Positions 138 to 62,987 of a stretch of 64,000 bases of DNA are shown piece after piece; position 1 is the stretch's first letter, and each line of letters begins with the position of its first letter. Under the pieces are notes generated by a model. The model did no database searches and was not told where the DNA came from. It worked only from the letters and a program-made list of their open reading frames with translations. The stretch is from Haliotis rubra (taxonomy: Eukaryota): the NCBI RefSeq assembly GCF_003918875.1, contig NW_025767635.1, positions 1,302,001-1,366,000 of the forward strand, given 5' to 3'. A program made the position numbers and the translations under genes.

Positions 138-988
138 GGTATATGTTTCTCTATATATCTGTTTTTCACCAAAGTTACCAAGTTATGCATGGCTAACTAA
201 GTCCCCCTGTACCGAGTCCTTGATGTCATTCATGTCAAAACAGTAGTTCCTGTTTGAAAACACAATCAATAAGTTAATAATCCGATTTCCTCTGAAAATA
301 ATGTACGAGGAAAAGAAAAGAGTCAGCGATTTGATGGGACATAATTTATTTTTAGCCAATGAGAACCCTTGCTCTTTTAAGTGCGGGGCAGGTTAAGGCC
401 AAGGTCATCAATGGTGAACGGGCACGACACAATTCAGTTTGCGATGAATAAATGTATGTAAACTCATGACAGTGAAGATGTAAGTGTCTCCGAAAGAATG
501 GCGACAAGCGCCATCAGTTCAACATGTTTTGGTGCATGTCGTTTGTGTAAACTGTGAAATAAACAAGAAAATGGGTGAGTTACCGCTACAAATTCTGAGC
601 AGGGATTTTGGCTCAGAATCGAGAAATCACGATTTTTCGAGCTTCTGAAGACCCTAGCTCCCAAAGTACTGCTTCGATATTTGTGCTGTATGTCTCATTT
701 TGTAGGTAAATCTATTGGCTTGAAAGGTGTGCATACTTTAAATGGGATAAATACAGTGAGTATTGTTGAATTCGCCCTGAAACGAACCTGGTGTGTTGAC
801 CGCGTTACATCCCTTTCCTTTTATATAGTGATAAGACCCCATCAGTGACAGTATATACCTTGATGGCAGTTTTTAGCGTTACAAGCCCCTGTGATTTCAA
901 ACACAAACTGTTACATCAATATGAAATAGAAACACATTCTGAATATGTGAAACACATACTAAAACAGAACACCAGATTACAATATTGA

Positions 989-1358
989 TACAATATAGAA
1001 CAAACTTTATGGATAACAACTTCTTTTTATTACCGTTGTCAAACATAATGGAACATGAAGAAGGGGAAGTGTAAGTGTGAGAACATACAGTCGTTTTCGA
1101 TACAGATTCTTGTACCGTTGTCAAGCATAATGAAACATGAAGAAGGGGGAAGTGTATATATACTGGATGTAACAATGTAACAAAGAAAACAACATAATTA
1201 ACATAATTGGCTAGGCAGAAAGCTGATGAAGCCAGAGAGTAGCCAAAGGACAGGCGTGGAAGCCAATGATGTTTATACAGCAGAGTTTATACTGTATCGA
1301 AACGTCGCACTCACGAATAAAAAGAAGTTGTTATCCATAAAGTTTGTTCTATATTGTA
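989..1358. mobile_element. Penelope-like element 3'-end fragment (minus) with an inverted copy of its terminus; 43-bp perfect inverted repeat
   Basis: 989-1031 is the exact reverse complement of 1316-1358. The reverse complement of ~1145-1240 resembles the 3' UTR of the PLE at 26300-26397 (ctggcttc..agct..ctgc.tagccaat; tgtt..cagtatatata..tacacttcc). ttatggataacaacttcttt is shared with 25295. Confidence 0.55.
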
Positions 1359-32841: not shown

Positions 32842-33903
32842 ACTGTAGGTCCACACAGTGAAGGCTACTACTGTAACACTGTAGGTGCACACAGTGAAGG
32901 CTACTACTGTAATACTGTGTAGGTCCACTGTAATACAGTGAAGGCTACTACTGTAATACTGTAGGTCCACACAGTGAAGGCTGTAACAATGTGGGTCCCA
33001 CAGTGAAGGCTACTACACACAGTGCATAACACTTTGTACACTGTAGGTCCACACAGTGAAGGCTACTACTGTGGCTGAACACTGTAGGCTACTGCTGTGG
33101 CTGGCGGTAGCCAGGTCCACACGGTGAAGGCTACTGCCAGCAATACTGTGGGTCCACGCACAGTGAAGGCTACTACTGTAACACTGTAGGCCACCCAGTG
33201 AGGCTACTACTGTAACGCGGTGGGAGGCTACTGCACACAGGTGTGAAGGCTACTACTGTAACACTGTAGGTCACACAGTGAAGGCTACCACACAGTGAAG
33301 GCTACTACTGTAACACTGTAGGTCCCACACAGTGAAGGCTACTACTGTAACACTGTAGGTCCACACAGTGAAGGCTACTACTGTAACACGGTCCACACAG
33401 GCTACTGTAACTGTAGGGTTCTGTAGGTCCACACAGTGAAGGCTACTACTGTAACACTGTAGGTCCACACAGTGTAACACAGTGTAGGTCCACACAGTGA
33501 AGGCTACTACTGTAACACTGTAGGTCCACACAGTGAAGGTACTACTACTAACACTGTAGGTCCACACAGTGAAGGCTACTACTGTAACACTGTAGGTCCA
33601 CACAGTGAAGGCTAACACTGTAGGTCCACTGCACAGTGAAGGCTACTACTACTGTAATACTGTAGGTCCACACAGTGAAGGCTACTACTGTAACACTGTA
33701 GGTCCACACAGTGAAGGCTACTACTGTAACACTGTAGGTCCACACAGTGAAGGCTACTACTGTAACACTGTAGGTCCACACAGTGAAGGCTACTACTCTA
33801 ACACTGTAGGTCCACACAGTGAAGGCTACTACTGTAACACTGTAGGTCCACACAGTGAAGGCTACTACTGTAACAGTGTAGGTTCACACAGTGAAGGCTA
33901 CTA
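32842..33903. repeat. 36-bp minisatellite (actgtaggtccacacagtgaaggctactactgtaac); last unit resumes at 37368
   Basis: Tandem units; ctacTA|MITE|TActgaaatactgtagg. Confidence 0.93.
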
Positions 33904-34387
33904 CAGTCGAGCACCGTTGTCTCGATATTCATGGGACCAAGAAAAAACATCGAGTTATCCGAACTTCGAGACATCCGACCAGGGCATATCGTCACATATC
34001 ACTATGAAAGAAATCAAAACGCTTCTCAGTATGTTATGATTCGAAACTATAATCCGTTATCAGTAGTGTTTAGTCGTAACAGTGAGTACTTCCTAATTAT
34101 TTCCTTCTTAATTAATCCTAATTAAATAACAAACAAGTGACACCTTCAACTCAATTAGCCCTAATTAGTTTACACTACCGCATCCCTTTGATTATGCCGC
34201 ACCGTGTGGAAACGTGTGGAAACAACCTCAGTTCAGAGGGATACTTGCCCATGAAAGGTAGGTGAAGATCGAGCTTCTTTGCAAATATCGAGTTAAAAGG
34301 GTAATTTTGCTTGTTGGGACCATGAAATTATATCGAGATATCCGAAATATCGAGACAACCGTATCGAGTTAAAAGAGCTTGAATAAT

Positions 34388-35477
34388 TATTAACACGGAA
34401 AAACTAGACAAAGTTTTATAAATACTTTATAACGATATGCGTTATTGAAAACTGGAAATATTACAGACTAACCGACTACGTTCCTCAATCTTACATTGAT
34501 AACGAGCATCGGACATAATCCGGGAACAGTATCTCTAAAGCTTATAGAACCAAGGTGCATTACGTTTATCTGTCTTTACGGCTGTTTGTATTCCACGTTG
34601 GTCAAATCACGTGTGTGCCACATATACCTTCGTGGCATACTCGCGACTGGCCATCGATGCTTCGGTCCAACTAAATGACATAATCTCACGTTCACAATAA
34701 CAACGTTATCGTAAGTTTTATCTGTAAACGCGATTATTTGCGATAGCTAGAATAGATATATATTACGGGTGACAGTCACAAATGAGGGGTGGCTGTCTAG
34801 TAAATTCACTCAGGTGTGTAACTTTACTTTCTTCTAGTTCGAGAAGTCTTTACCATTTCTGTTCTGTGTTAACTTAATCTTATTGGGCATCTCTTTACTA
34901 TTTGTTACCCTTGGCACAATCGTTAGGTTTATGTGGAACGAGGCATTCCTTAGTATGTGTCTCATATCTTCTGTATTACAGTGTAGGATTGTTTATTTAA
35001 TACTGATTGACCCTACAGTGACTATTATAGAATGTTTATAACATGGTGTGTCGGAAATTTTAACTATTGTATTACGTTGTGCATGAATACTATATGCTGC
35101 TTGGGACCGTTACAGAATGTAGATTGTATGAACCCCAACTGGGGTGATGTGTAGAGTTCTGAACTATTGTTGTGTACATTAGAATATGTATCGCGATTAA
35201 TGTGTACATTAGAATATGTATCGCGATTAATGTAGTATGTGTCGTGTATAACGAATCTACATGTGATGTTTATGTACTTTGATATCTGATTGCATTCTGA
35301 TCATGTTCTAATAATTAATTGTAAACTATGCTATTATTGACTGATTATGTAAAATCGTTCAGTGACTGCTGTGTAATAAACTCCTTGTTTATTTACTCAG
35401 ATGTTGTGTTGTGTGTGGGTTGGTATGGGCAGACCTATTGCCAAGCGAGCTGATTCCCCAAAACTCGCGTTTTAATA
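34388..35477 (+). repeat. Putative 5' LTR (~1090 bp)
   Basis: Short inverted termini tattaacacg...cgcgttttaata; aataaa at ~35375; immediately followed by a PBS-like sequence and the gag ATG. Confidence 0.7.
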
Positions 35478-35479
35478 GG

Positions 35480-35490
35480 TGGCGGAGAAT
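35480..35490 (+). promoter_or_regulatory. Primer-binding-site-like motif (tRNA-Ala-like)
   Basis: tggcggagaat, 2 nt after the LTR end; one mismatch to tggtggagaat, the complement of a tRNA-Ala 3' end. Confidence 0.55.
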
Positions 35491-35503
35491 CAAAAATCGA
35501 CCT

Positions 35504-36824
35504 ATGGCTACATACCAACCCACAAACTACAACACTAGGAGCCGGACACCGACCTCCGACCCCCGCCGACGAATACAGCGGCCTTGGCGAACCACTGGAG
35601 GACCTTACAACCATAGCTTCGGGCCCAAACACAGACAGCGTTAATCCTCCAGTCACTATCAACGAGGACAGGATTGCGTCGGGCCCAAACACTGAGGGGT
35701 CATCCTTCAGCCGTGCGACAAGACACACAGTCTCCCAATATGGCATACGTGAGTGATCTGGTGCCAAAATTCAACGGTACAGGCAACGCCCGACAATGGC
35801 TGAAGAAAATGAATTGTTTTTCGACAGTATCAATCACTCACAGATTCCGTCTACTTGAACCTCCTGCCGTTGTACGTAGACGGACCCGCTGCTACCTGGC
35901 TGGACTCGCTTCATCCAGCCCCAACAACCGCAGCCCAATTCGAAGCCGTCTTCACTCGTAGGTTCAACGACGTATCCTCACAGACGGCTTTCCTGTCCGC
36001 CCGCCAAAACGACACCGAGTCCCGGGTCTGCCTTCATTGAACGTGTGCACGAGATGAAAGCTGGCCTCCAGATCCCTGAGACCCTCCTTGTTCAAGTCAT
36101 TATCAATGGCTTGCAGCCTCCTTTGAAGGGATTAGTCATTCCCCATGATCCACAATCACTAGAGACATTATCACTTCAGGTAAGACTGGCTGAAGCTGCT
36201 CTTCAAGCCACCCAGGATGCCACCCCATCCATATCATCCGGGACATATCCTGGGGTTGACAACGATCAACTGGCCACCATCGCTGCTCTGTTGACAACAC
36301 AACAGCAGCAACTTGACAAGTTGACTGCTCAGATGGCCCACGATCTCCTGAGGCAGAATGTCAACACATATGTCAACCGTGATCAGTCCCACCAGCCCGG
36401 AGTCAACACACGTCGTTCTGCCCAGCCTCTGCAGCAACAACAACGGCAGCAACAACAACGGCAACAACAACAACAACAACAACAGAGGAACAACAACAGA
36501 CAAACCTCAGGTAATTGCCGGGGTTGTGGTAACGACTGCAGGTCTAGAGTTTCATGTCCATCCTCTAATCAGCAATGTAGCTATTGCAGTGGGTTACATC
36601 ACTTTGCTAGGGTATGTCGCCTTCGATTGAATCAGCAATATGGCTTTGCGCCTGCTGGTAGGCTCTGGCCTATGAGCAGGCACACCTTAAGAGCCCCGAG
36701 GGGTAGAAACACGTCAAAATCTTCTCTCAGTAGGCATACCAGTACCTCGAAATCATCGAGTTTGTCCCATCAATCACAGATTAAGTTAACACACAATAGA
36801 AATGGTAAAGACTTCTCGAACTAG
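35504..36824 (+). pseudogene. gag: Gypsy-type Gag (capsid, poly-Q linker, zinc knuckle) with 2-3 frameshifts
   Basis: VPKFNGTGNARQWL, LLPLYVDGPAATWLDSL, FTRRF, RQNDTES..FIERV, IINGLQPPLK, and CRGCG..CPSSNQQCSYCSGLHHFARVC (CX2CX4HX4C); the last frame ends inside the inverted repeat. Confidence 0.85.
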
Positions 36825-37671
36825 AAGAAAGTAAAGTTACACACCTGAGTGAATTTACTAGACAGCCACCCCCCTCATTTGTGACTGTCACCCGTAATAT
36901 ATATCTATTCTAGCTATCGCAAATAATCGCGTTTACAGATAAAACTTACGATAACGTTGTTATTGTGAACGTGAGATTATGTCATTTAGTTGGACCGAAG
37001 CATCGATGGCCAGTCGCGAGTATGCCACGAAGGTATATGTGGCACACACGTGATTTGACCAACGTGGAATACAAACAGCCGTAAAGACAGATAAACGTAA
37101 TGCACCTTGGTTCTATAAGCTTTAGAGATACTGTTCCCGGATTATGTCCGATGCTCGTTATCAATGTAAGATTGAGGAACGTAGTCGGTTAGTCTGTAAT
37201 ATTTCCAGTTTTCAATAACGCATATCGTAAAGTATTTATAAAACTTTGTCTAGTTTTTCCGTGTTAATATAATGATAAATTATGAAGGATTTTGCCAGGA
37301 CCGAGATGTTATATCGAGACAACCGAGATATAGAGTTATCAGAGTTCGACACAACGCTGCTCGACAGTACTGAAATACTGTAGGCTGACACACTCACTGT
37401 TACCTATTTGGCTCCAAGTTGTTACTAATTAATAGTGTACCAATGCCTTTCAACCATTTCAATCCCAGAAGCCTCAATAGCCATTGTCGCTACGCCATTG
37501 AGCACCCCCTCCACGTCGTGCAGCGTTCAATGTGGCTCCCCTCGCCCCACTTTAGAAAGGTACAACTTCGTTATTTTGTTTATCCCACAACCATGGAGGA
37601 GTTTACTATGCAACAGCGGACAACAGGCTGGTCACATGACTGAACGATATCGATCAGTTCCACACGCGACG

Positions 37672-62180: not shown

Positions 62181-62752
62181 TGACCACCTTTGTCTCGATA
62201 TTCATGGGAGCAAGAAAAAAATCGAGTTATCCGAACTTCGAACCAGGGCATATCATCACATATCAGTATGAAAGGAAACAAATTAACGTTTTATGTGATT
62301 CTCAGTATGTTTTGATTCGAAACTATAATCCGTTATCAGTAGTGTTTAGTCGTAACAGTGAGCACTTCCTGATTAATTCCTTCTTAATAAATCCTAATTT
62401 ATTAGTAATTAAATAACAAACAAGTGACACCTTCAACTCAATTAGCCTCAATTAGTTTACACTACCGCATCCCTTTGATTCATGCCGCACCGTGTGGAAA
62501 CGTGTGGAAACAACCTCAGTTCAGAGGGGTATTTGTCCATGAAAGGTAGGTGAATATCGAGTTTCTTTGCAAATATCGAGTTAAAAGGGTAATTTTGCTT
62601 GTTGGGACCATGAAATTATATCGAGATATCCGAAATATCGAGACATCCGTATTGAGTTAAAAGAGCTTGAATAATGATAAATTATGAAGGATTTTGCCGG
62701 GACCGAGATGTTACATCGAGTTATCAGAGTTCGACACAACAGTGCTCGACTG
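62181..62752 (+). mobile_element. Uninterrupted copy of the 33904 MITE
   Basis: Colinear with 33904-34387 plus 37274-37367; ends agtgctcgactg|TA. Confidence 0.92.
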
Positions 62753-62987
62753 TATTGGGTGTTGTTGTCAACCAAATAACTGGTAGACAGGTGTAAATGT
62801 GCGTACAGATGATAGCTATTTCCAACTTAATTTAAAAGAAAATGCACACAGTAATCTTTACATCTGCATATAAAACAATACAAAAAAGAAAAAAAAGTAT
62901 CTAAACGTAAATCCATCATGTCTAGTGATAATTGTTCTCAAATTTCATTTTCATCACTAAAGTTTGTTATCAGCTGCTTGTTCACCT

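Follow-up and report, generated by a model that had tools for sequence, protein, structure and literature searches.

A probable integration of aberrant Ty3/gypsy cDNA with two U3 ends in Haliotis rubra, and its recurrence in the same family

The stretch of Haliotis rubra DNA analyzed here, referred to as the window, comprises 64,000 nucleotides of contig C2745 (NW_025767635.1) in a 1.38-Gb assembly (C2745:1302001-1366000), and coordinates given without a contig name are window positions. It carries at 34388-37269 a single unit of 2,882 bp, which begins with a complete long terminal repeat (LTR) of a Ty3/gypsy-type retrotransposon, continues into a gag gene, and closes with an inverted copy of the first part of the same LTR, both tips being U3 (unique 3ʹ) termini. 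Most probably, this unit is a young, one-off insertion in which the integrase of the family joined an aberrant cDNA with two U3 ends to the chromosome. The same type of event, which lay beyond the view of an earlier note on this DNA, recurs in the family: at least ten independent units with two U3 termini, the window unit included, and one unit with two U5 termini were found in the assembly. What these units show is that molecules with two identical tips were integrated in a single step, that inner junctions carry microhomology, and that such events recur.

Results

Structure of the window unit

The complete LTR (34388-35477, plus strand) is 1,090 bp long, with limits set by many other copies and their target site duplications (TSDs). 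Its positions 1-493 form the left inverted arm (34388-34880, plus strand), and the right arm (36778-37269, minus strand) is the reverse complement of LTR positions 1-493 and stops exactly at the U3 terminus. The two arms align in three blocks without gaps (42, 358, and 95 nt, with 100%, 100%, and 98% identity, respectively), and a global alignment shows two substitutions (34861 and 34864) and two short indels, one of 2-3 nt at 34429-34431 and one of GG at about 34785. No other LTR in the genome is as close to either arm as its partner: two substitutions in 493 bp separate the arms, against 96% identity for the next LTR.

A 12-nt sequence resembling a primer binding site (PBS), TGGCGGAGAATC, lies 2 nt 3ʹ of the LTR (35480-35491, plus strand) and also ends the right arm of L057, one of the further units described below. 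The gag gene (35504-36785, plus strand), with its ATG at 35504, ends where the protease would begin. Its DNA is 96-98.5% identical to gag of two-LTR copies and encodes a CX2CX4HX4C (CCHC) knuckle at 36576-36617. The gene is broken across three frames, with open reading frames (ORFs) at 35674-35961, 35855-36040, and 36045-36824, and it scored 18.2 bits against Pfam Retrotrans_gag, which is below the threshold, compared to 26.9 bits, above the threshold, for gag of the two-LTR copy L031. At the inner junction, element position 2398 is joined to LTR position 493, and 8 bp of microhomology (AGATTAAG, 36778-36785, assigned to neither strand) are common to the gag-side donor and the inverted LTR 486-493. 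Between the arms there are only the rest of the LTR, the PBS, and the broken gag, without pol, a polypurine tract (PPT), or a second direct LTR. The window copy is dead on arrival and has not multiplied.

The unit is flanked by TAAT on the left (34384-34387) and on the right (37270-37273). A paralogous copy of the host repeat at 62475-62754, 96% identical to the window flanks (34188-34387 plus 37270-37469), passes uninterrupted through a single TAAT (62672-62675) and serves as a proxy for the empty site. The TAAT/TAAT duplication and the exact U3 termini on both sides indicate that the window unit entered in one piece. The earlier note had described an inverted copy of the first ~490 bp with two substitutions and two short indels, an LTR-like block followed by a PBS and a Gypsy-type gag with a CCHC knuckle, and a real 4-bp TSD. 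All of these were confirmed here, and the split of gag into three frames is new.

Public read data were used in the form of short Logan contigs, which come from two studies and three samples other than the assembled individual. Short contigs from four public runs joined 34382 to 37269 and skipped 2886 positions, that is, the unit plus one TSD; these contigs are uninterrupted copies of the host repeat. The host repeat is dispersed, has a second copy 28 kb downstream of the insertion, and showed very high k-mer depth in all four runs. A 36-bp tandem array at 33504-33943, with about 12 copies of 83-100% identity, lies about 450 bp upstream of the insertion, and a weak match of the same 36-bp unit was seen beyond the insertion at 37368-37403.

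The retrotransposon family

A related copy with two direct LTRs and pol, the features by which the earlier note had proposed to look for a parent, was found in L031, which was used as a coordinate reference only. Its ORFs encode, in order, Retrotrans_gag, an aspartic protease (RVP/gag-asp), RVT_1, RT_RNaseH, rve/Integrase_H2C2, and Chromo, and judged by its coding sequence, the family is a Ty3/gypsy LTR retrotransposon, chromovirus-like. The PBS beside the 5ʹ LTR, the gag with a CCHC knuckle, and the TSD of 4-5 bp (here TAAT) of such elements are all present in the window unit; two direct LTRs, present in normal family members, are absent from it, since it has one full LTR and the inverted LTR 1-493. 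In normal copies and in solo LTRs the TSD is 4 bp long (among others TAAG, ATAT, ATAT, TATT, GCTG, and ATAC). When the U3 tip (TATTAACACGG) was compared with the reverse complement of the U5 tip (TATTAAAACGCG), about 10 of the 12 terminal bases agreed, so that the integrase meets nearly the same sequence at either end.

The LTR of the window unit is a mosaic. LTR positions 1-493 are 95-97.5% identical to LTRs that we call A-type and are without an alignable counterpart in L031, whereas positions 814-2398 of the unit (PBS and gag, preceded by the probable R and U5) share 96-99% identity with autonomous T-type copies, bases 814-1090 being closest to the T-type. Mosaic LTRs that arise by strand transfer between co-packaged RNAs are established (PMC6894440), and the composition of the window LTR has the pattern that would be expected from first-strand transfer between two unlike RNAs of this kind. 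Inside the T-type LTR, a stretch of 51 bp is repeated in direct orientation (L031 element positions 424-474 and 983-1033), and a short LTR form without the ~508 bp between the 51-bp repeats occurs in both arms of L057 (L057 1558-2117 and 3384-3950).

Transcription probably starts near LTR position 814, which would place the left arm (LTR 1-493) upstream of the start. For this reason, the folding into long double-stranded RNA that the earlier note had envisaged would need read-through from outside; the element's own transcript would instead bear antisense U3.

Copy number of the junction

A query covering the inner junction (36700-36860, 161 bp) was searched against the assembly and matched at full length at the window alone, no second copy of the window gag/inverted-U3 junction being found in the 1.38 Gb. 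The other matches covered either query positions 1-86, on the gag side, where they ran on into protease, or the query from position 79, on the LTR side. The junctions of two further two-U3-end units, L039 and L050, were also single-copy in the assembly.

An apparent second LTR-gag-inverted-U3 unit was present twice on contig C2411, in L045 and L049, with shared flanks, the shared TSD TGTG, and a junction that differs from that of the window. We considered this pair as proof of a transposing LTR-gag-inverted-U3 family and rejected it, because identical flanks together with an identical TSD mean segmental duplication. The duplicated loci (C2411:2872500-2882000 for L045 and 2927400-2936400 for L049) are about 55 kb apart and 97% identical including the flanks, and both adjoin long arrays of a 36-bp satellite. 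Compared with the longer copy, the shorter one (L049) has lost the segment of roughly 2.2 kb that lay between two direct copies of U3.

Recurrence of two-U3-end units

The assembly was searched with the U3 terminus (100 listed of 165 matches), with the T-type variant of this terminus (54 matches, all listed), with the arm, and with the whole LTR, and all unit counts are lower bounds. At least nine further independent units with two inverted U3 termini were found, ranging from 223 to 6,168 bp, each with its own junction and flanks. In the window unit (TSD TAAT) the two halves, followed from the tips inward, reach positions 2398 and 493. The halves reach 992 and 552 in L033 (C2631:90806-91928, 1,123 bp, TSD TTAG), 799 and 224 in L038 (C1391:794094-795117, 1,024 bp, TSD GTATA, of 5 bp or offset by 1), and 529 and 125 in L039 (C2159:924415-925048, 634 bp, TSD CTAT). 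They reach 1068 and about 60 in L040 (C2178:2449007-2450148, 1,142 bp, TSD GTAG/GTAA), 200 and 28 in L050 (C1535:488560-488782, 223 bp, TSD GTAC/GTAG), and 5102 and 1063 in L051 (C511:25102-31269, 6,168 bp, TSD ATAC). L057 (C2502:369057-371449, 2,393 bp, TSD CTTG) has one half reaching 2365 and one consisting of the LTR plus the PBS, and L058 (C1269:1228012-1230151, 2,140 bp, TSD GTAA) has halves reaching 945 and 877 plus a second switch. In L045 (C2411:2874217-2879505, 5,289 bp, TSD TGTG), one half reaches 2711 and the other is a nearly complete element of a non-autonomous group, here called 'Y'. L033 was found by BLAST alone and missed by the terminus pattern, its left arm retaining just 12 terminal bases.

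A perfect in-register 4-bp TSD was observed in 7 of the 10 units, the window unit included. Given the flank composition, a perfect TSD is expected by chance in 0.5% of pairs, and 7 of 10 corresponds to P of about 7e-15. The arms within a unit are 97.7-100% identical, except for the short, older arms of L040 at 88%. Among roughly 44 T-type U3 termini, eight sit in four two-U3-end units.

A search with the U5 terminus yielded a single U5-U5 unit among 100 listed of 139 matches. This unit, L055 (C2614:25026-25379; L055 2027-2380), is 354 bp long, has two inverted U5 termini and a perfect TSD (AACA), and its interior is pieced together from LTR 922-1090 (reverse complement), 598-690, and 1052-1090. 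Among the matches listed, U3-U3 units thus exceed U5-U5 units by roughly 10:1.

Many inverted-end units have TG before and CA after the 4-bp duplication (for example, TG-TTAG-CA, TG-CTTG-CA, TG-GTAA-CA, and TG-AACA-CA), which may reflect a weak palindromic target preference of the integrase. Direct-orientation deletion derivatives of the family were also seen, as a same-orientation counterpart of the inverted units: in L054 (696-7196) LTR position 154 is joined to gag position 1725, and in L056 (1829-3281) the LTR plus 260 bp is joined to LTR 994-1106. The flanks of both agree at three of four bases.

Junctions and the strong-stop signature

Like the window junction with its 8 bp, the junctions of L038 (7 bp, TGGAATA), L051 (8 bp, CTGCCCAT), and L050 (5 bp, AACTT) have microhomology, and that of L039 has about 14-16 bp, which derive from a short inverted repeat inside the LTR. 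Every half of every unit, read from the tip inward, is collinear plus-strand sequence (U3, R, U5, PBS, and internal region). In 9 of the 10 units, the shorter half is no longer than the LTR plus PBS, and in L057 the end of this half coincides exactly with that of the 12-nt PBS, so that it is as long as a completed plus-strand strong-stop DNA. If an 8-kb cDNA broke at random, at least 8 short halves in 10 would have P of about 5e-4, and the five units (six with L058) in which both halves lie inside the LTR would be far rarer still. As the shorter half is almost always within the LTR plus PBS and once ends exactly there, plus-strand strong-stop DNA is implicated. L045 unites an autonomous-type half with a non-autonomous 'Y' half, which, like the mosaic LTR of the window unit, speaks for the co-packaging of unlike RNAs.

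The 'Y' group

At least 10 copies of the non-autonomous 'Y' family were seen, among them L034 1911-5313, L035 1879-5202, L036 1821-5123, L037 1882-5432, and the right half of L045. At the left end, LTR 1-428 gives way to about 80 bp of diverged U5-like sequence, after which come a PBS-like sequence (TGGCGGGGGACC) and a gag-like start; the right end is a full LTR of 1,088 bp. In the right LTR, the stretch that the left end lacks (429-1013) has splice-site-like borders, CAG/GTAAGA on one side and TTTTACTCAG/G on the other, with the slash marking the border. The left and right U3 are 97.4-99.8% identical within a copy and 92-95% between copies, and the TSDs differ between copies, indicating that the asymmetry is regenerated at each transposition. 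Canonical LTR replication cannot regenerate it.

Discussion

Proposed origin of the units

We propose that two plus-strand DNAs, both with U3 base 1 as their starting point, would pair within the particle through microhomology at their 3ʹ ends. In the window case, one plus strand would have run past the PBS to the end of gag, and the other would have been a 493-nt nascent plus-strand strong-stop DNA; alternatively, a single plus strand may have folded back onto its own U3. Two plus strands could be supplied by the two genomes of one particle or by re-initiation at the PPT that displaces an earlier strand. Reverse transcriptase would then extend each strand on its partner up to the 5ʹ end, and the product would be a blunt duplex, tipped on both sides by U3, that the integrase would take up and insert with the 4-bp stagger usual for it. 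Minus strands would account for the rare U5-U5 unit in the same way. That the integrase accepts two U3 tips would follow from the about 10 of 12 terminal bases that the U3 and U5 tips share. Avian and murine integrases accept U3-U3 mini-donors in vitro. We give plus-strand pairing or fold-back, as the specific step, about an even chance.

Several points speak against this account or limit it. The inner junction of the window is without read-level confirmation, since no Logan contig bridges 36778-36785, a result that is uninformative rather than negative. The TSDs of three units (L038, L040, and L050) are imperfect or offset, and the census covered 100 of the 165 U3-terminus matches and missed L033 by its pattern. 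In L045, a 5-bp filler takes the place of microhomology at the junction, which fits host end joining equally well. Better survival of small units may inflate the strong-stop signature, a bias that would leave the exact PBS endpoint unaffected. Finally, the replication intermediates are deduced from their products rather than observed, and the model would require displaced single-stranded plus strands, which are not known for this family.

Competing explanations

The competitor with the most to be said for it, though we regard it as unlikely, assumes two double-stranded cDNAs or fragments, each with one U3 tip, which were ligated tail-to-tail by host end joining before integration or were integrated bimolecularly and then joined by microhomology-mediated host repair. 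The final structure would be identical, the microhomologies of 5-8 bp suit alternative end joining as well, and L045, with two different elements and a 5-bp filler, fits this route. Moreover, integrases can act in vitro on donor ends from two different molecules, and fragments of unrelated DNA can be inserted in vivo by Ty1 integrase (PMC2939329). However, neither host end joining nor random breakage predicts a short half confined to the LTR plus PBS or the exact PBS endpoint, and the ~10:1 excess of U3-U3 over U5-U5 units among the matches listed would be unexplained unless right ends were systematically unfinished.

The earlier note had offered two alternatives, a one-off aberrant reverse transcript (by fold-back or strand switch) and an undescribed gag-only family with inverted LTRs, a 'TIR-type derivative' (TIR, terminal inverted repeat) mobilized in trans by the integrase or particles of the family. 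The single-copy junction, the TSD, and the 8-bp microhomology favor the former, which is our main reading. For the latter, as for the readings that follow it, we see very little chance: the clean TIR-like termini with a 4-bp TSD, the fact that Gypsy-type integrases can move TIR-bounded DNA, as in Ginger DNA transposons (PMC2836005), and the apparent second unit on C2411 would suit it, but the window junction is single-copy, as are those of L039 and L050, the C2411 pair is a segmental duplication with a different junction, the window gag is frame-broken, and the internal junctions differ in all ten units. Reshaping after insertion, by deletion or inversion in a normal element or in two elements (such as one inserted in antisense within or beside the other), is just as improbable. 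Antisense self-nested insertions of LTR elements are documented for EVD in Arabidopsis (PMC11624286) and deletions at microhomology are common, yet the right tip is an exact U3 terminus abutting the second TSD copy, which would demand a breakpoint precisely at the boundary of element and host, or a second hit into the same 4 bp, at ten loci, and each arm has its closest relative in the other. A scenario of two independent hits into one 4-bp site with subsequent deletion was rejected as implausible for ten loci with varied TSDs, and autointegration was rejected because its junctions would include an LTR terminus, yet positions 2398 and 493 are no termini. The probability that the assembler made the inverted arm or the inner junction is negligible. 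The family is repetitive and the public contigs are uninformative on the inner junction, but a misjoin would not yield a perfect TSD at an exact inverted U3 terminus, would give a symmetric fold-back rather than the asymmetric junction of 2398 to 493, and would not recur with proper TSDs at nine other loci on different contigs.

Relation to known systems

The integration of an aberrant two-U3-end cDNA, which we prefer for the window unit, has partial parallels. In Triticeae, 'complex' LTR insertions arise by template switching, that is, abnormal strand transfer followed by a single integration with a TSD (Sabot & Schulman 2007, PMC1950507). They share with the present units a non-canonical cDNA, a single TSD-flanked integration, and near-identical outer repeats. 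However, they have the direct order LTR-internal-LTR-internal-LTR with one U3 and one U5 tip, whereas the window unit is inverted and without a third LTR; in our model, a switch onto the same-sense strand would make both tips U3. Inverted forms are not mentioned in PMC1950507, where the word 'inverted' occurs 0 times. A likely functional analogue among non-LTR elements is L1 twin priming. There, 5ʹ-inverted L1 copies are likewise a recurrent by-product: two DNA strands that are primed on, or paired with, one template leave an inverted segment inside one TSD-flanked insertion, and the junction has microhomology (PMC2912911). The reverse transcription of L1 is target-primed and takes place at the chromosome, whereas here the aberrant molecule would be complete before the DDE integrase acts, and here the inversion renders both tips identical. 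Self-priming (snap-back) of HIV-1 minus-strand strong-stop DNA in vitro, a dead end suppressed by nucleocapsid (PMC6088434), resembles the proposed step in that a 3ʹ end pairs with a same-sense strand and reverse transcriptase extends it; unlike that case, plus-strand products dominate here and were integrated into the germ line.

Ginger1 and Ginger2 (PMC2836005) are TIR-bounded and moved by a Gypsy-type integrase, with 4-bp TSDs and tips resembling Gypsy LTR tips, and may in part share these traits with the present units. They encode an integrase-like transposase between TIRs that measure about 40-270 bp, and their families have many copies, whereas the present units are without a transposase and single-copy; the window arms measure 493 bp, and their tips are TATTAA (TGTTAA in some copies), compared with TGTNR in Ginger, with a 4-bp TSD present. 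DIRS elements are also retroelements with inverted terminal repeats and use a tyrosine recombinase in place of a DDE integrase (PMC3950715); typically, they insert without a TSD. The present family instead has an rve integrase and a chromodomain, direct LTRs in normal copies, and 4-bp TSDs, and a domain search of its pol found no recombinase domain, with rve and Integrase_H2C2 present. Mu killer-type inverted duplications and LTR hairpins (PMC11624286) likewise contain an inverted partial copy with the potential for hairpin or antisense RNA against their own family, but they come from rearrangement or nested insertion, unlike the window unit.

In the literature searched, which was thin in older virology and leaves priority not firm, no description of TSD-flanked inverted-end LTR insertions was found; one guppy foamy-like endogenous retrovirus is remarked in passing to have an 'inverted LTR' (PMC5210030). 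Of the ten units described here, seven combine two inverted U3 termini with a perfect TSD. Olsen and Swanstrom are said to have described, in J Virol in 1985, a defective avian retrovirus DNA with inverted LTR sequences.

Significance

The window locus itself is a dead, single-copy accident, and the interest lies in the recurrent class and its replication-intermediate signature. As the same accident happened at least nine more times, the integrase of this family does insert DNA with two left ends in a living genome, which provides genomic in vivo evidence that two compatible tips are enough for a Gypsy-type integrase, without the need for a U3 tip together with a U5 tip. The junctions record which replication intermediates go astray, namely plus-strand strong-stop DNA.

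It is a tentative generalization, which we put at rather less than an even chance, that the replication of LTR retrotransposons regularly yields, as a by-product so far undescribed, insertions with two U3 ends and, in rare cases, with two U5 ends, formed from paired or folded plus strands and inserted by the element's own integrase. If this were true, such units would account for roughly a tenth or more of the recognizable U3 termini in the family and would be the LTR-element counterpart of L1 twin-priming inversions. If the class were general, LTR finders that demand direct repeats would miss it, and counts of 'solo' or fragmentary LTRs would be inflated. Each unit also sets antisense U3 downstream of an LTR promoter and is a plausible seed for small-RNA silencing of the family. 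The units show concretely how an LTR retrotransposon can give rise, in a single step, to TIR-bounded DNA with integrase-recognized ends, which bears on the origin of Ginger-type elements; were the generalization to hold, they would be a natural source of TIR-bounded DNA compatible with integrase, from which Ginger-type transposons as well as antisense or hairpin triggers of silencing could be made.

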